64,000 nt of DNA, from positions 124,001-188,000 of the forward strand of contig JAPMXV010000053.1 in the NCBI GenBank assembly GCA_026936335.1, read 5' to 3'. Below the pieces are notes generated by a model that did not search any database, was not told the DNA's origin, and saw only the letters and a program-made list of their open reading frames with translations. The first letter of the stretch is position 1; the number at the start of each line of letters is the position of its first letter. Source of the DNA: Mantamonas sphyraenae STR306 (lineage: Eukaryota > Protista > CRuMs). Positions 12,522-22,646 of this stretch are shown piece by piece. The position numbers and the translations under genes are program-made.

Positions 12522-15500
12522 ATGAGTGCAGAGTTTCAACTGCGTTCGCCCATCATCAAACCAAAGTCGGCAGGGTTGGATGCCCTGCTTCTGCCTTCAG
12601 CCAAACAGCGGCGCTCGGGACCAGCGGGGGGTTCCACGGGTGGCCGGGGAGCCTCGGGGGCTGTGGAGCCGCCGAAGGATCTGCTGCTGAAAATGAACAA
12701 GAAGATTGCGCAGCTGACCAAGGTCATCTACCACCTGAACACAAAGAACGAGGACCATGAAAGCGAAATGAAGGGTCTGGCCGACGCCTACGAGAAGGAG
12801 ATTGACCAGGTGGGTGGAAACCACGTGTGCAAACGTCTGCTCGCTCGACCGTTTCTTTTTTTTGGCGCACTGACCCGACCGGCGTCGACACACAGATCCT
12901 GCGCGACGCATACACGAAAATCACTGCGTTCCGTGAGCAACTGGAGGGCAAGAAGGACAGCACGCGTGTGCAAGCAGCTCTGGAGAGCATGCGGGAGGCG
13001 CACGAGGCTGAAAAGGCGGCGGTGCTTCAAGAGCTGTACAGCTTCAAGGAAGAGGTGGCTCAGCACGAGAAGCAGATGCAGGCATTGGCGAGCAAAAAGG
13101 TGCAGTCGATGACGTCACAGCTGTCGGCATTGAAGAATGACTTTGCGCTGCGCCTTCAAGAGTTTCAAAAGACGAATCAACGGCTGCAAGGGCAGCTGGA
13201 GGAGCAGGGCGAACGACACGGCAAGGAAATTGCCACCCTGCAACAGGAATGGACGGAAAAGGTGGAAGCACTGGTGCAGGAGCATGATGCGGCGCTGGCA
13301 GCGGTGCATCAACGGCAGCGGGAGTCGGAAAGCGAGGAGGCACGCCAATTGCAGGCCAAACATGAGGAGGAATTGGCCAAGGTGCGACAGGAGTTGGCAC
13401 AGGCACGTGAAGCAGCCACTCAGGCAGAATTGGAGCACACGGCGGCACTGGCGGAGAAGCAGGAGGTGTTGGCGAAAACGCAGGCGGATTTGCAGGCGTT
13501 GCAGCAGGCCAAGGTGTCTGTAGAGGAAACGTCGTCGGTGGCGGCGCAACAGTTGCAGAAGCAACTGGAGGAGACACAGGGACAGGTGACGCAGAAGCAG
13601 TCGCACATCGACAGTCTGCAGCAATCGCTGGAGGCGGCGATGGCGAAGCAGGAGACGGCCAAGGAGCTGCAGGAGCGCATGGAAAGGGAGGCCGAAGCAA
13701 GCAGGGCCCGCGAACAGGAACTTGGCAACCGGGTGACTGCTCTGGAGGGCCAGCTGGAGGAGGAGCGAGGGCGATGGGAAGCAGCACACTCTGCGGCGAG
13801 CGAAAGCAAGGCAGGGTTGCAGGAACAACTGCGGAGTGCGCACAGCGAACTGGAGGTGCTGCGCACAAAGAGCGAGACGGCAGCAAAGACGATGGAGCGA
13901 CTGCGGAACCAGGTGGAGGAGGGAAAGGCCGGGAAGGCGCGTGCAGTGAAAGAGGTGGAGGAGATCAAAGCGGCGAGCACACGTGCGCTGGAGAGCAAGG
14001 AGAAGGAATGGGAGGCGAGGATGAAGGATGCGTTGGCCAAGGAGCGCGAATCATTGGGCAAAGACAAGGCAGGCGTCGAGGCGGAGCATGCCGAGGCCAT
14101 GGAGGCCCTGCAGAGGCAATTGCGTGCTGCAAACGCAGAGCATCAGCGAGCTTTGGCGGCAGCAAAGGAGGAGGCGCATGCCGAACGGGCGGCACTGAAC
14201 AAAGCGCACGCAGAGGCGATGGCGGCAAAGGAAGAGGAGCAGGCTGCGTCGGATGGGACGTCGCGTGCAAGGATAAAGCAGCTGAAGGGGCGTGTGGAGG
14301 CGGCAAACAGCACGGTGGAAACGCAGCAGGCGCAGATTGCGGAGTTGGAGGCACGTGTGGCGACGCTGGAGGAGGAAGTACGCGTGGCACGGGAGGAGTT
14401 GCGTGTGGGCAAGGAAACCGCCGCGAGGGAGTCAGCAGCTGCATTGGAGGCTGCCGAAAAGGCATACCAGGAGCAGGTGGCGGTGGTGGAAAAGCGCATG
14501 AAGGGCATGCAGGACAAGGAGACGGAACAGGTGGTGGAGAAGCTGAGCGCAGAGATGGCCGAGTTGCGTGCCGTGCACGAGCGGCAGAAGAGGGAGTGGC
14601 AGAGCGGTGCAGACGCGGCGCAGCAGGAGGCAGTGGCGGCGGCGAGCAGCGCGTTGAACGAAAAGTGGCAACGCAAGCTGATTGAGACGCAGGAGGCGAC
14701 GGCGAGGCGATTGCGAGAGGAACTGGGTCAGGAACAACAGGTTGCGGTGAGCAACACGCGAGAGACGCTGCAGCTGGAGTTTGCGCGCAAGGAGGCGGAG
14801 CTGAAGAAGGCAAAGGAGGCATTGGAAGGACAAGTGCGCTCGCTGGAGCTGCAGGTGGAGATGCAGGCAGAGAACAGCAGCAAGGGGGCAGAGGCATTGC
14901 GTGCGGAGCTGGCAGAGACCAAAGCCAAGGCGGCGGCGGAGCTGGAAGCGGAACGAGAGAGCCACCGAGAGGCGATGTTGCAGATGCAGGAGGTGCAGGC
15001 TGCGGAGCTGGCAGAGGTGCGCAAGGCTGCGGACAAAGAGGCGCAGGCCAAGGTGGAGGCTGCACAACGTGCACAGGCGGCGGAGCACCAGAAACGTGTG
15101 GATGCGATGCGTGCGGCGCACGAGCAAAAGGGAATCGAGTACAGAGAGCAGTGGAAGGTGAGCGAACGGGAACTGAAAGCGCGTCAGGAACGGGAACTGG
15201 ACACGGTGCGCAGCAAGGCCGAGGGCCAGGTGGCACACGAGCGCAACAAGGTGGCGGCCAAGGAGCGTGAACTGGAGGAGGCGGCACAGCGGCTGCGTGC
15301 GGCGACGCAGGGGCGTGAGGCGGCAGAGGAGGCGCTGCAGGCGGCCAAGCAGGAATTTGTGTTTGGGCGCCAGGAGATGGAGGAGCGACACGAGGAGGAG
15401 CTGAAGGCGCTGCGGGATCACTTTGAGGAGAAGCTTGCGTCAGAGCAGGAGGCGTATGCGCTGGAGATGCGTGCGCTGGCTGTGGAGCAGGCACAGGTGG

Positions 15501-16072
15501 AGGCGCTGCACGAGGAGAAGTACGGTGCGCTGGAGGCGCAGCTGCATGTGATGCAACGACGGTTCGAAACGCGCGAATCGCGTCCAGAGGACATCGAACG
15601 CATCCAGGCGTTGCAACATGAGCTGGAAAAGCAAGCGTTGTTTGTGAACAAGGCAGCCGACGAGGTGCGCTTCTACAAGATGGAGCTCATCAACCGCGAA
15701 GAGTCGTACAACAAGACGTTCAGTCGCACGCCTAGTGTGGGTCTGCTCAACGTGCTCAAGTCGCGCGAGCAAGACTCGATGGTGTTTGGCAGCGAACGGT
15801 TGCCAGACATTGGCGGAGGAACCACTGGGGCGGGAGGCTCCTCCACGCTGTCACGCAAGAGCAGTGGCGGACAGAGCTCAATGCGTGTGGGCGGTGGGAT
15901 GAAGCGCAGCAACACGGGGGGCGGCGGTGTGGGTGGCAAGCGCAAGAGCAGTGGAGGCGGCGGGGGCAGTGGCAGTCGCAGTTCAAAGTCGTCCGTGCCT
16001 GTGCCTCAGCCTCCATCGTCGTCCTCGTCGCGCGCTCGTTCTGCAGGGCGACGGGGAGTGAGCAACAGGTGA
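12522..16072 (+). CDS. FAM184: FAM184-family coiled-coil protein
   Basis: N-terminal MNKKIAQLTKVIYHLNTKNEDHE and C-terminal RESRPEDI..MELINREESYNKTF signatures. Intron 12810-12895. Confidence 0.85.
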
Positions 16073-16121: not shown

Positions 16122-19100
16122 TCAGTTGTCGCCCTCGCCGCCTGGCACAAGCACAGACTCGGAGTCCTGGCGGACCAGAGTGAAGCTGTCCTTGAGTGCG
16201 GATCGGTTCTTGCCGCCTGCAAAGCGCTGGGTGGCCATGGCGAGGCAGTGGAGGACCTTTGCCTCGAGGAGTTCCTCGGAGCGTTGCTTGTTGGGGTGCG
16301 GATGGGCATCGTCTGCATCGCCGGCACCCTCCTCGGACATGTCGTACATATGATGCCTGACGACACCCAGGGCACACACACTCATCTGCATGTGGCGTGC
16401 GACGAGGATCTCAAAGATGCAGTCGTGGGAGATGGCCTGAAGGCCAAGTTGACGCATGTAGCGTGCGGTGGCGTGGGAGTTGTACAGCGTCTGGCAGGAA
16501 ATGCCGATGTTGACATCGACAGCGGGTGTGTCCTTGTCGTCATCCACGCAGAGGTCCTGCTGTTCGGTGCCGTTGCTGCTGGCGCCTTCCCCCTCCCCGT
16601 CGTCGGTGTTTGCCTTCTTGTTCTTCTTGTTCAGACGCGAAGCGTAGACGTCGGTCATGTCTGGGAAACGGACGCCCCAGCGGGGTTCGTTGTGGCCGTA
16701 GAGCGGGTTGCGTCCGAGGAGGTTGACGTGGTCGCGGAAGTGGAGGACGTCGTAGCGACGCAGCTGCGGATCGATGGAACACATACCCACGGCAGCAACA
16801 ATGTGAATGACACCGGCGTGCTTGAGGGTACGCACGACGTGGCTGCGACAGTCGTTCTGCGCTCGTTCGGTCACGGGACGGATGCCAGTCACGTACACAA
16901 AGCGGACGTCGTCCACCGTGCCGAGCACAATGGTGGCACGCACGTGTGCGGCGTCGGGCATGTGCGGCAACTGCGACAGTTCCACCTTTTGCTCGACAAC
17001 CATGCGGTCGCCAAACAGGGGCAGCTCCTCGTTGGCGAGCAGACCCACAACAGGCAGATCTTCGCCGCCGCACAGCTGGTCCTTGAGAAAGTCGGCGGCC
17101 TCTTGGATCTCCTCGTACACACCCTGGCTCTCCTTGGCCGGGGTGAACGTGTTGCCAGCGTGCAGGGCGAGATCGACGGCTGCGCTTTCGTGTTGGGCCT
17201 CGATGGCCTCCAGGGTGACCGCAGCAACGTCGTCGGCAGCCACCTCGGCACGCACGTCCTCCGGGGTGTGTTCGTGGCTGGCAAAGGTGGTGAGGAGGTC
17301 GGTGAAGTAGGCAACGAGGTAGGCGTCATTGGCAGCGTCCAAGGCCTCGTTGATGGCCGCCAGAGAGGCGGTGCCTGGCTCGTACAGAGCAGCCAGGGCG
17401 CTCGTGCACGTGGCCACAATGTTCATGCCACGGCCTTGCGCACACTGGATGATGGAGGCCCACGAGATGCCCACCTGATGGGCGTCCACGTTGACGGCAA
17501 TGGCCACTTCGGGCGGGGTGGGCAGCTGCGGGCCGTCAAAGGCCATGTATGTGCCGGGGAGGTCGGCAACCTGGTCGAGACTCTTTGCCAGATCCAGAGC
17601 CATGCCCACATACTCTTCGGAGAAGGGCTCCTGTTCGGTGAGGCTCTCTGTGGCAAAGGCATCGACGGGTTTCTCCACCCAGCGGCCGGTGTGGTCGATG
17701 AGGTCGTTGAGAACCATGGTGCTGCCGACAGGGAGCTGATGGGTGTCGACGGAGCTGCCCACGAGGGCCTGGGACATGATGGAGACGCCCAGGAGCTGGA
17801 GGACGGCCACGAGGAAGGCGCTCTCCTCGTTGGTGAAGCCCTGGAACTCGTGCTGGGCGAGAACAAAGACGGGCGATTGGCCCTGCATGCCCAGGTGCAG
17901 GGTGCCACAGAGGCCGTTGACAGAGAGCACAGGCATGTGTGGGATGTCGGCCACTTTGAGGCTGACGGGATCCTGCAACTGGGCTGCGAGGGCGGCTGCG
18001 AGCTGGGGAAAGGCAACCACACACATTTGGACCTGTTTGCCCCAGCCTTGCTTCTTGATGGCCATGTTGTACACGTAGGCAGCAGCCTCGACAAGCATCT
18101 CTGTGGATGCAGGGCGTGCCAGACGGGGTGGCAGCGGCATCGAGGTGACCACAGACGACGAGGCTTGTTCGGTGGACGATGCCTCGTCTTGGGTCTGTTG
18201 GGTCTCGTTGGCAGTGTCAAGCACCTCCACGCGACGGATGAGCTCGGAAAAGATGGCCTCAAACTTCTGTGCGGCACTCTTGGCCTCATCCTGCACCTCT
18301 TCGTGGGTGAGCACCGAGTCGCTCATGCCTGCGGCGAGGTTGGTGATGACACTCATGCCAAAGGCCTCCATGCCGGCTGCGTTTGCGGCCAGGATCTCTG
18401 GGATGGTGCTCATGCCAAAGCAGGACGCTCCGTTCGATGCACCCGAGATCACCTCCAGTGGGGTTTCAAATGTGGGCCCGGGTGACCAGCAGTAGTTGCC
18501 TGCGGGAGGTGGGTGGGTGGGTGAGCGAGAGCGGCGGGGCAAAAGGCGGTGTCAGGAATCGTGTTTCGATCGCTGGTGGGGTAGATCCACGCAAACAACC
18601 GGCAAGTGGGAGGGGCACGCGGCACGAGTGCATGTGCATGGGGCCAACAAAAAGGGTGGACTCGGTGCGTGTGGCCTGGATGGGGTACCTTCAAACACGT
18701 GGATGTCGAGGTCGGAGGCGACGTCGCGAGCAAGCTGCTGCAGACGCGGGGAAAACACCTGCGACGAGTCGAGCACGGGGGGACCAAAACGAGGGTCGTA
18801 CTTGAGATCCGAGATCGGGGAGCGGCGGACACTGTTGACATAGGAATTGATGATCATGCAGCAGCCCTTGTACATGCCCTCTCCACAGCCGCCGCTGGCG
18901 TTGCTGGCAAAGAGGATTTTGCAGCCAACGGCCGCCATGACGCGCGCGTGGAAGCCCAGCTCGTGCAGGTAGAATCCCTCGTAGGCGTGGATGCGGCCTG
19001 CGAAGCACAGGATCTGTACACACAGCGTGCATGTGTTGTGCGTGCGATGGCCCCGTTCCCAATGTTCATGCGCGCGTGTCAGAGAGTGGGAGCCAGGCGG

Positions 19101-19628
19101 AGGATTCTTTTTTTAAGGGGCAAAAGTCGGCAAGTTGCGGCGACGGACCGAGAGGGCCAAAGTCGCGGGCAAAGGGAGAAGGGGGTAATTGGGCAGGGGA
19201 AATGGAGCAGGGATGCCCCCTTTGATATGGAGGTGGCGCACGTACGTTGCGTCCGTGGATGGTGCCATGTACGAGACGGCCGCTGTGTCCGGCGACGCTT
19301 GTGCCGGGCATGTGGGGCACGTCTTTCATGGCGCACTCGGTGACGTTGTCCATGAGCGACGCAAAGTTGCTCAGGCCACTGCCCAGCACAACAGCAATCT
19401 CTGCAGTGCCCACATTCTCGCGCACGTATGCAGCTGCTTCTTCGATGTCCTTGGCATAGGCATCGGTATCCTGTGTGGTTGGCCATTTCGGGCGCAAGGG
19501 GCAGCGACGGCAAGGGGCGGCGGATTTTGCGGGTCAGGGATCACTCCCGCGTACTCTCCTGCTACTCCGGTTCACAGGGAGAGAGAGAGAGAGAGAGAGG
19601 CACATACAAAGGTAAGGAATTCGGTCAT
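16122..19628 (-). CDS. PNP: Purine nucleoside phosphorylase (trimeric NP-I type) with three tandem PNP domains, 4 exons
   Basis: MTEFLTF|DTDAYAK..VLGSGL..VAGHSG|..GRIHAYEG..SNASGG|..GPTFET..GMSTIPE..ITNLAAG..THEEV, followed by two degenerate PNP repeats. Confidence 0.9.
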
Positions 19629-19686: not shown

Positions 19687-22646
19687 ATGTCGCTTGCGTC
19701 ACGTCGAGGCAGGGTGCTTCCTGAAATCCATGCACCACGGCTGTTGCAACAACAGCAGGAGCAGCGTGCACAGGAGGCGGAAGCTGTGGAGCTGCAACAA
19801 CAACAACAGCAACAACAGCAGCAGCAGCAGCAATACCAGCAGGAGCAACGTCAACACGGGTCTGCTCACCGTCGTCGCGAGCAGCAACAAGGCGAGGATG
19901 AGGACGAAGGCGGGGCAAACAACAACGGCACACGGTTCACTCGTAGCAACAGCCTTGCACAGCGCATCGAATCGGCGCCGTTCATTCGGCAAAACACAGC
20001 AAGTGGGCGCACGTTTAAGCGCATTGTGGACGGGCAGCCGATGCCCGAACAGGAAAGCAAACATCTGACCCCCACTGCGGCGGCGTTTGCCATCGTCAGC
20101 TCGCAACTGACGCGGGGGATTGGGGGCAAGGGGTTTGAGGCAGTCACGAGTGCCACAAGGTAGGTGTGGCGAGGCGCATGCGACGTCAGTGCGGCGCGGT
20201 GCGGCAGAAAGTGTGCGGGTGGTCGGGAAGCTGACACACACACACGGGGGCTTTTTCTGGTGGGCCCTTGCAACGTCTACAGCCTCCTGGCGATCATCCG
20301 CTTGACAGAGAACAAGGCGGGACGCATCGGAGAGTATATCTTTGGGTTTTCGCTGATGGGCATTCTGCTGATGCTTGTGCAGAATGAGCTGCTGTACTCC
20401 CATTTCCGCGGGCCGGACCCAACGTCCGTCTGTGAAGCCTGTGAGATCACAAAGGGATTCGTTTCACTGTCGACTCTCATCGCACGTACGTTGTATGGGG
20501 GCGCATTGGTGGAGTGGGGCGGGTCCGTGGGACTGCAGTGTGGCCCAGTGGCGCGCACGGGCCGCAAAGAAGGCCTTGCCGCAACGGTCGGGGAACGCAG
20601 ATTTTAGTTTTGACTAACACCCACCCACACCACACGCGTACACACACAGTGTCCCTGTTGCCAAAGCTGTACACGTACTTTTGCAAGCTGCTGCAACTGG
20701 AGAACATGTTGCCTGCGGAAGCCAAGTGGTACAACACGTGGTTGCTGAAGCAGTTCCTGGTGGAGTTCTTCATCATTCTGCTGCATTTCCCACCGATGGT
20801 CAACGTGGCACCCACGATCTACGTGTTCTTCAACAAGCCCGTGACCAACTTTGGCACAGAGGTGTTCTCGCTGCTGCTGTTTCTGCGCATCTACCAGTTG
20901 CCCCGCGTGATTCTGTTCCGCTCGCGCTACTTTCGCGAGTCCAAGTTTCTGGGAGCCATGACGGACATCAGCGTGAGCACGGGCTTCACTCTGCGTGTGC
21001 ACGCCTACGAGTTTCCCATGCTGTCCCTGGCCTTCTTTGCCAGCGTGGTGTTTCTGTTCTGCTCCTACTCCATCTACGTGTGCGAACGCTACGTGGCCCA
21101 GGACTTTTTCTACACCGACTCGGCCTGGTTTACGGTGGTGACAATGACGACGGTGGGCTACGGTGTGATCACACCGGCAACACACATGGGCCGCTTCTTT
21201 GCGGTGTTGGCTGCGATTTCAGGCACGATTGCCACCTCGCTGATGATTGTGTCTGTGAACAACCGCATGAGTCTGACGCAAAAGGAAATCAAGGTGGTGT
21301 CGCTGGTGAGCAAGAACCGCTTTCGGCAAAAGATCCGCTCGATGGCGGCGACGTTCATCCAACGCGCCTGGCGCTACTCGGTGGCAAAGAACGACGGAAG
21401 CAGCATGCGTTCGGTGTGGTACCACAAGCGCCTGGTGTTCTCTGCGCTCAAGGCGTGGCGGCGGCTGAACCGCAGGTCCATTCAATCGTCGGCTATTTTC
21501 CAGGAGAGTGTGTCGAGTTCGCGCATCGAAGACATTTTTCACAGGGTTCGCATGATGGAAGAGCAACTGGAAGTGATGCTGGAGTCGGATGCAGCCACGG
21601 CGACGGCTGTGCAGGAGCTGGACGACGCGTCGCTGAACGCAATGGATCCTTCTCCGCGGCAATGGCCTGAACGCAGCAACAGGGGTGCGGGAATGGGCGG
21701 AGTTGGAGGGTTGGACGACGGATCCGGACTGACGGGCTCACTGACAGCACCAGTGGCATCGGGGGCAGGAGGACGCAGCAGATCGAGCAGCACGAGCACA
21801 ACGACAAATAGCCTGAACAGCAACGTGGGCCCGCTGGTGGGCAGCATGGTGGAGCACGGGGCAGCCGTGGAGGCTGAGGGAAGGCTGGTGATGGTGCCCC
21901 GTCCGGGCACAGGCGTGGAGAACGGAACTGAGGGGCGACAAGCGGGGACAGGTGGTGGAGGAGCGGGTGAAAAGGGAGGCAAACCGGGAGGCAAAGGAGA
22001 TGCGGTGATGGGACACACTCTGCTGGATGTGAGTGTCAAGGTGGATTCCATTGCGTCTGCACTGGAGGAGCTGAACAGCAAGGTGGTGTCACGCCTGCCC
22101 AAGGCGAACAAGGGAGGCGGGAACAACCTGAGCTTTGAAGACAGCATGAAGAATCGGATGAACGAGCTGCAGGAGAAACTGGTGACAGTGTACAATGTGT
22201 TGGAACAGACGCAGCAGCAGCAACGAGAGCTGCAACAATGGCAGGCCACGTGGCAGCGCCAGTTCCAAAGCCAGCTGGAGACCATTGGCACACTCTCGGT
22301 CGCTCTCAGCAGGGCAGCAGGGGTAGAGACGGATGTTGGGGGAGGAGGCGGTGGAGGAGGCGGAGGCGGAGGTGGAGGCGCAGATGAGAGCGACGTTGGC
22401 GATGCGAGCGAGATTGGAAGCATGTCCAACAGCCACAGCAACCACAGTGAAGGTGGAGGAGGAGACGGAGCGGAGAGGTTGATGCAGGCGTTGGACTCGC
22501 CTGGGGCAGATGTGCGGCGCGGGTCGTCGGGGTCGCTGCAGCCGCTGCGCGGTGCACAGGGTGACAGGGAGCGAGGGACGTCGACGGCGGCATCGTCGAT
22601 GCCGTTGCCGTCGCTGGGACGCGATGCGAGCAACAGCAGCGGGTGA
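19687..22646 (+). CDS. Small-conductance Ca2+-activated (SK/KCNN-like) 6-TM potassium channel
   Basis: Exons 19687-20159, 20283-~20485 and ~20650-22646. S1 GEYIFGFSLMGILLMLVQNEL, S4 LFLRIYQLPRV, pore TMTTVGYG, CaM-binding-like AATFIQRAWR. Confidence 0.85.

Follow-up and report, generated by a model that had tools for sequence, protein, structure and literature searches.

The window analysed here is a 64,000-nucleotide stretch of the genome of Mantamonas sphyraenae STR306 (contig JAPMXV010000053.1, positions 124,001 to 188,000). On its minus strand, from 19628 to 16122 (window positions, here and below), lies a gene whose product carries three tandem purine nucleoside phosphorylase (PNP) domains, called D1, D2 and D3 from the N-terminus. 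The DNA of the window is GC-rich (~60%), eukaryotic, and interrupted by short GT..AG introns. Our gene model has four exons, all on the minus strand, which together make 2949 nt, that is 982 codons and a TGA stop. Residues are numbered throughout as in human PNP. Exon 2 (19246..19470) encodes the N-terminal part of D1, with the N-terminal helix, the GSGL motif of the Ser33 site and GHSG, which holds His64. Exon 3 (18689..19013) encodes the middle of D1, with GRIHAYEG (Arg84, His86 and Tyr88), SNASGG (Asn115 and Ala116) and a degenerate inter-subunit loop. Exon 4 (16122..18499, stop TGA at 16122-16124) encodes the C-terminal part of D1, D2, D3 and a tail.

The C-terminal part of D1, the whole of D2 and the whole of D3 are contained in a single, unbroken open reading frame (ORF) of 806 codons (16122-18542, minus strand), preceded by two in-frame coding blocks. 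All introns are of the GT..AG type, with donors GTATGT, GTACGT and GTACCC and CAG as the acceptor in every case, and the exon junctions align without gaps to homologues (..HGRN joined to ILCFAGRIHAYEG.., and ..HVFE-G joined to NYCWSPGPTFET..). Exon 1 is a putative mini-exon of 21 nt (19608..19628), with the ATG at 19628 and the donor GTATGT. It was placed there because exon 2 has no in-frame ATG upstream of the domain, because the resulting N-terminus has the length found in homologues of the family, and because a candidate divergent gene starting at 19687 on the plus strand, 58 bp away, leaves scant room for further 5′ exons. A (CT)10 dinucleotide repeat (19579-19598) falls within the predicted intron 1, of which it forms the pyrimidine tract.

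Homology searches were run on single exons, and the full-length fold was computed on an orthologue, P0001, described below. Pfam family PF01048 (PNP_UDP_1), whose gathering score is 25.1 bits, matched all three domains above this cut-off: exon 3 alone gave 3.5e-08, the whole of exon 4 gave 6.5e-35 with three matched stretches, and D2 and D3 gave 7.3e-11 and 9e-10, respectively. Three tandem PNP domains in one polypeptide had been proposed in a sequence-only reading of this DNA, and these matches bear the proposal out. The NCBIfam PNP model scored 8.7e-20 on exon 3. With exon 4 alone, NF006054 reached 242 bits (cut-off 218), again in three stretches, and TIGR01697 reached 219.9 bits (cut-off 197.1); the assignment is to the inosine/guanosine PNP family, not to MTAP. 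Solved trimeric PNPs of the Protein Data Bank were matched with phmmer by D2 (8e-16) and by D3 (1.6e-15).

The motifs listed in the sequence-only reading were all found, on the minus strand, and its domain limits are close to ours. D1 contains GSGL, GRIHAYEG, SNASGG, GPTFET, GMST, ITNL and THEEV, together with a degenerate loop, SYVN..RRSPI..RFGPPVLD. The part of the D1 catalytic core encoded by exon 4 spans 18339..18467 (Glu201 equivalent at 18467-18465, Met219 and Ser220 at 18413-18408, Asn243 at 18341-18339), and the equivalent of His257 lies just beyond it, at 18305-18303. D2 (17268..18122) contains QHEFQGF, GPQLPT and VGISW; it has lost the catalytic residues and the loop, and retains the site-face motifs EGF and GPxxPTxxE. 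D3 (16218..17138) contains GIRPVTER, QTLYNS and SHDC in place of the catalytic residues, and a near-canonical loop, DHVN..GRNPLYGHN..WGVRFPDM..Y.

Both D2 and D3 are predicted to adopt the PNP fold, an outcome on which the earlier proposal had made itself depend. In an AlphaFold model of the exon-4 product (predicted local distance difference test, pLDDT, 74.8; predicted template modelling score, pTM, 0.79), D2 (residues 127-411) aligned to whole PNP chains with VIA-align Z scores of ~28-29 over 260-267 residues, and D3 (residues 455-761) with Z 29.8 over 270 residues, at a root mean square deviation of 2.2-2.5 A. A lineage-specific Lys/Asp/Gly-rich insertion in D3 (16527..16616), which appears as a gap in the alignment with homologues and has a pLDDT <50 (residues 629-658 of the model), is probably disordered.

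We then compared the residues of the three domains with one another and with those of single-domain PNPs, family conservation being scored over ~35 highly divergent orthologues. D1 of the window has Ser33, His64, Arg84, His86, Tyr88, Asn115, Ala116, Phe200, Glu201, Met219, Ser220, Thr242, Asn243 and His257. Across the family, Arg84, His86, Tyr88, Asn115, Glu201, Met219, Ser220, Asn243 and His257 are all at 100% in D1 (90-100% in single-domain PNPs), while His64 and Ser33 stand at 96% and 84% (100% each in single-domain PNPs). None of these catalytic residues is conserved in D2 or D3 in the family alignment. Position 201, for instance, is Glu in 100% of D1 domains and of single-domain PNPs, Pro in 87% of D2 domains and variable in D3. 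Examples of the replacements are Pro (D2) and Asn (D3) at position 201, and Ser (D2) and His (D3) at position 243. Positions 33, 64, 84, 86, 88, 219, 243 and 257 of the D2 pocket are variable or gapped across the family, the pocket positions of D3 are variable too, the alignment shows no conserved polar residue in either pocket, and the residues that D2 and D3 do conserve sit on the interface faces, outside the pockets.

D1 would thus be the domain that phosphorolyses inosine and guanosine, and the gene is probably the only inosine/guanosine phosphorylase of the organism, because the two other PF01048 loci of the 25-Mb assembly are an MTAP-type phosphorylase (contig C44, 420995-421729) and a spliced, weakly uridine-phosphorylase-like gene (contig C31, 243190-243801). 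This argues for a housekeeping role in purine salvage.

The inter-subunit loop (134-166) has the opposite distribution. In the window it is found as DHVN..GRNPL.G.N..WGVRFPDM..Y in D3 (16644..16733, with the codon for the Phe159 equivalent at 16667-16665), and as a degenerate loop in D1 (18753..18848), in which Val takes the place of Phe159. Only three columns of the family alignment are invariant (Gly, Gly and Phe), and all three belong to the D3 loop. Phe159 is present in 100% of D3 domains and in 86% of single-domain PNPs, and is near-absent from D1, where His, Gln, Gly and other residues occupy the position; in D2 the loop is mostly deleted. Gly149 and Gly156 are both at 100% in D3, against 6% and 53% in D1 and 86% and 77% in single-domain PNPs. 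The same order is seen for Arg158 (97% in D3, 46% in D1, 68% in single-domain PNPs), Asn151 (94% in D3, lost in D1, 63% in single-domain PNPs) and Tyr166 (97%, 78% and 90%, respectively, with Phe in 33% of D2 domains). Leu147 stands at 94% in D3, 56% in D1, 30% in D2 and 95% in single-domain PNPs. The stem is more widely kept: Asp134 and His135 are at 90% and 87% in D1, at 94% each in D3, and at 100% and 81% in single-domain PNPs, with Asp134 at 89% and His135 variable in D2. D1 therefore retains only the stem of the loop, Asp134, His135 and part of NPL, and the D2 loop, of ~12 to 38 residues across the family, has no conserved residue. As judged from the alignment, the D3 loop is more conserved than that of ordinary single-domain PNPs. 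In one orthologue, P0050, the D1 loop still has an Arg-Phe pair (RFGPRFVD), and it may represent a step on the way to a D1 without the Phe.

The division of labour first read from the window, with D1 the only catalytically equipped domain and D3 the only one to retain the inter-subunit loop, is thus constant in the divergent orthologues. One element of that proposal does not stand as worded, namely that the D3 Phe caps the active site. Phe159 is the sole residue contributed by the neighbouring subunit, yet it makes no contact with the substrate, and the F159A mutation alters the activity of human PNP little (PMC9916683). PNP that has been made monomeric is reported to have an improper active-site geometry and to lack proper activity (PMC9916683). 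Retention of the loop in D3 is upheld, a capping of the substrate by the Phe itself is not, and the constraint is better described as acting on the whole loop (141-168), which would scaffold the D1 site.

The sequence-only reading had suggested a search for triple-PNP orthologues among protists, and these were found. A word-indexed search with exon 4 retrieved three relatives, among them a "purine nucleoside phosphorylase" of Planoprotostelium fungivorum (P0002). An exhaustive profile search retrieved ~40-60 representative clusters (50% identity), whose proteins are 700-1000 aa long and align to the three-domain profile over most or all of its length. Family proteins of 800-1000 aa come from Acanthamoeba castellanii Neff (XP_004339283.1 / L8GW90), Planoprotostelium fungivorum, Luapelamoeba hula, Diphylleia rotans, Rigifila ramosa, Pygsuia biforma, Gefionella okellyi and Lapot gusevi; KAL0219132.1 and an MMETSP transcript are further members. 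The family spans Amoebozoa, CRuMs, breviates, malawimonads and Rhizaria. The window protein is only 25-29% identical to any member, and it carries the family motifs nevertheless: the D3 loop DH.N..G.NPL.G.N...WG.RFPDM...Y with its invariant Phe, a D1 loop devoid of that Phe, and in D2 GPxxP(T/S)..E and EG(F/L). Many orthologues are complete ORFs in transcriptome assemblies, hence a single mRNA encodes the three domains in these orthologues.

In a tree of the separated domains and single-domain PNPs, the D2 rows formed one clan (Shimodaira-Hasegawa-like approximate likelihood ratio test, 87) and the D3 rows another (96, starred), and the D1 rows were intermixed with ordinary PNPs. The starred sets that took in D2 and D3 of the window comprised 37 D2 rows and 34-36 D3 rows, respectively. 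Because D2 and D3 each form a single clan, the tree indicates one old triplication, retained long-term under selection. Further searches brought little: a word-based search with the D2-D3 region of P0001 returned only P0001 itself, a follow-up profile search added few named proteins, and the ESM Atlas, queried by features and by shape, gave only PNP clusters of a single domain or of unrelated length. One of these clusters, a "purine nucleoside phosphorylase" of 643 aa found mostly in arthropods, is of a length to suggest that animals have a two-domain PNP fusion of separate origin. P0002 has, after its three PNP domains, a C-terminal His_Phos_2 (histidine acid phosphatase) domain at residues 920-1263 (2.8e-35); either a nucleotidase has been fused to PNP in this protein, or the gene model merges two genes.

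How could the three domains be packed? In ordinary PNP, the 134-166 loop extends over to the adjacent subunit, where it supports the active-site segments 87-91 and 196-205, including an aromatic cluster around Phe159. At the interface of calf PNP, residues 87-91 and 196-205 of each subunit receive the 141-168 loop of its neighbour, with Asn137 and Asn145 contacting residue 199 and Glu205, and Arg148 contacting Met87 and Tyr91 (PMC9916683). Conservation of this receiving face is graded in the family. Glu89 is at 100% in D1, 69% in D2 and 41% in D3; Gly90 at 96%, 89% and 44%; Pro198 at 100%, 94% and 52%; and Glu205 at 100%, 94% and 36%. The donor loops rank differently, D3 being the most conserved, D1 next, and D2 having lost its loop. 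We favour the order D3 to D1 to D2 and back to D3 because it is the only one in which loops and faces of like conservation meet: the strongest loop the strongest face, the middling loop the middling face, and the lost loop the decayed face.

A compact arrangement is also predicted for P0001, an Acanthamoeba-type orthologue of 893 aa that was folded with a family alignment of 41 rows. Its AlphaFold model has a pLDDT of 90.3 (90-96 in the D3 loop) and a pTM of 0.92; its D1 superposes on PNP chains with a template modelling score of 0.97, and the Phe159 equivalent of its D3 is F761. Since pTM is 0.92 over three domains, the model points to a single fixed assembly and speaks against domains strung out like beads, and the chain would be monomeric.

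Taken together, these data lead us to propose, with a probability of about 0.7, that the gene encodes an NP-I inosine/guanosine-type PNP in the form of one chain of ~108 kDa, which folds on itself into a pseudo-heterotrimer mimicking the homotrimer. D1 would carry the sole active site, and D3, itself non-catalytic, would lend its 134-166 loop to D1. The loop of D1, half decayed, would in turn go to D2, a dead domain of which only the matching surface remains (EGF and GPxxPTxxE) and which would close the ring; D2 would have no loop to donate, and the corresponding receiving surface of D3 has decayed. Of the composite site first suggested for this protein, a D1 pocket with a D3 lid in an intramolecular trimer, the compact assembly is supported by the orthologue model, and the direction of the loop is read from the conservation of the interface faces, a good but indirect support for a D3 loop facing the D1 pocket.

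Several points weigh against this proposal. The position of the D3 Phe at the D1 site comes from the conservation of faces, not from coordinates. AlphaFold may reuse the interface signal of homo-oligomers, which would partly inflate the pTM. The window's own model spans exon 4 alone and is of moderate quality (pLDDT 74.8), and both exon 1 and a single mRNA in Mantamonas sphyraenae are unproven predictions. Lastly, given the mild effect reported for F159A (PMC9916683), the invariance of the Phe needs the argument that the whole loop acts as a scaffold.

The graded faces can also be read with the ring turned the other way. The D3 loop would then cap the D2 pocket, a conserved non-catalytic site for regulation or ligand sensing, and D1 would work with the variable D2 loop. 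The retention in D2 of Pro198 and Glu205 (94% each) and of Gly90 (89%) would fit such a site, as would the near-fixed Pro at 201 (87%). However, the D2 pocket positions listed above are variable or gapped, the fully conserved site-face of D1 would look onto a D2 loop of ~12-38 residues, none of them conserved, and the D1 loop, of moderate conservation, would be paired with the D3 site-face, which has decayed the most; we regard this handedness as improbable. Slightly more doubtful still is an assembly between chains, in which like domains trimerise (three D1, three D2, three D3) or chains swap domains into polymers. Ordinary NP-I PNPs are obligate homotrimers, which makes the idea a natural one, but a trimer of D1 only would have no Phe159 loop at any of its active sites, and the invariant D3 loop would serve dead sites only. 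Moreover, the single chain models compactly (pTM 0.92), and the graded faces are explained by contacts of unlike domains, D3 to D1 to D2, most clearly within an intrachain ring.

Alternatively, or in addition, since the two are compatible, the D2 and D3 pockets may bind a metabolite and tune D1 allosterically. Pseudoenzyme domains often adopt such roles, and the near-fixed Pro at position 201 of D2 is otherwise unexplained. Yet in neither domain does the family conserve polar residues of the pocket, and the residues that are conserved lie on interface faces. Conserved ligand pockets in D2 or D3 were rejected on this ground, and the earlier suggestion that two pseudo-sites had been freed for ligand or regulatory roles finds no support; we think such tuning unlikely. 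It seems similarly unlikely that the pockets, or the joint between the D3 loop and the D1 site, sense a metabolite and gate the single site, which would make the family an ancient and widespread allosteric protist PNP. Least probable by far is an artefact in which three adjacent PNP genes, or decaying pseudogenes, are read through as one ORF. Its one foothold is that a single mRNA in Mantamonas sphyraenae is predicted from sequence. The C-terminal part of D1, D2 and D3 nevertheless share one uninterrupted ORF of 806 codons, the same domain order recurs in complete ORFs from independent transcriptomes and genomes, and D2 and D3 are each a single clan with long-term conservation. Three separate genes or pseudogenes were accordingly rejected on the basis of the ORF and of the orthologous complete transcripts.

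Two neighbours flank the gene. The candidate divergent gene on the plus strand from 19687, 58 bp from the PNP ATG, begins MSLASRRG.. and has a poly-Gln tract (CAG/CAA run at 19795-19833). On the other side, a 1081-codon ORF (12827-16072, plus strand) encodes a long coiled-coil protein rich in Glu, Ala, Lys and Gln, the tail of which is rich in Gly and Ser; it is convergent with the PNP gene, and only 49 bp separate their stop codons.

Compared with the NP-I trimeric PNPs of human and calf (PNPH-PUNA-XAPA, TIGR01697 / NF006054; 1ULA, 1LVU), the fold is the same in D2 and D3 (Z 28-30) and in D1 (template modelling score 0.97 for P0001), D1 has the full catalytic set, and the logic of a loop reaching to the neighbour, described for those enzymes (PMC9916683), appears to be shared. 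The differences are that those enzymes have three identical subunits and three sites, whereas the window protein is one chain with one predicted site, that it splits loop and pocket between domains, and that linkers of 40-60 residues join them. With its orthologues the window protein shares the domain order, the pattern of active D1, dead D2 and loop-bearing D3, and the position of D2 and D3 inside the family clans; it differs from them by its own D3 insertion and a more decayed D1 loop. The nearest described architectural analogue, not homologous, appears to be the single-chain pseudo-heterotrimeric dUTPase of Drosophila virilis, likewise a normally homotrimeric enzyme of nucleotide metabolism, with shared inter-subunit sites and three linked domains in one polypeptide (PMC12524310). 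That enzyme has an unrelated fold, and its three domains are described as near-identical, without a division of labour around one site (PMC12524310). A literature search for tandem, triple or pseudo-trimeric PNP, or for Acanthamoeba PNP, returned nothing relevant. A fused PNP trimer reduced to a single pocket, a single donor loop and a domain that closes the ring thus appears to be undescribed; the novelty claimed at the outset holds for the literature, but the orthologues are already in public databases under the plain name of PNP.

PNP serves as a drug target and is a textbook example of a homotrimer. Why it should be a trimer is debated, as is whether it works with "one-third-the-sites" or with independent sites (PMC9916683 and papers cited therein). 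If our proposal is true, a protein left with a single site, a single donor loop and a domain to close the ring would show which parts of each subunit are indispensable. It would also provide an asymmetric trimer made by nature, whose site, loop and scaffold could be mutated one at a time, something that a homotrimer does not allow. Were the metabolite-gated form to be true, it would be a natural one-site trimer able to settle whether the subunits of trimeric PNP communicate. The protein would also be a clean example of subfunctionalisation following the fusion of an oligomer into one chain. By its taxonomic span the family is old. Many eukaryotes that have been little studied may rely on it as their main PNP, Acanthamoeba included, where a structurally distinct enzyme of purine salvage could have practical interest.

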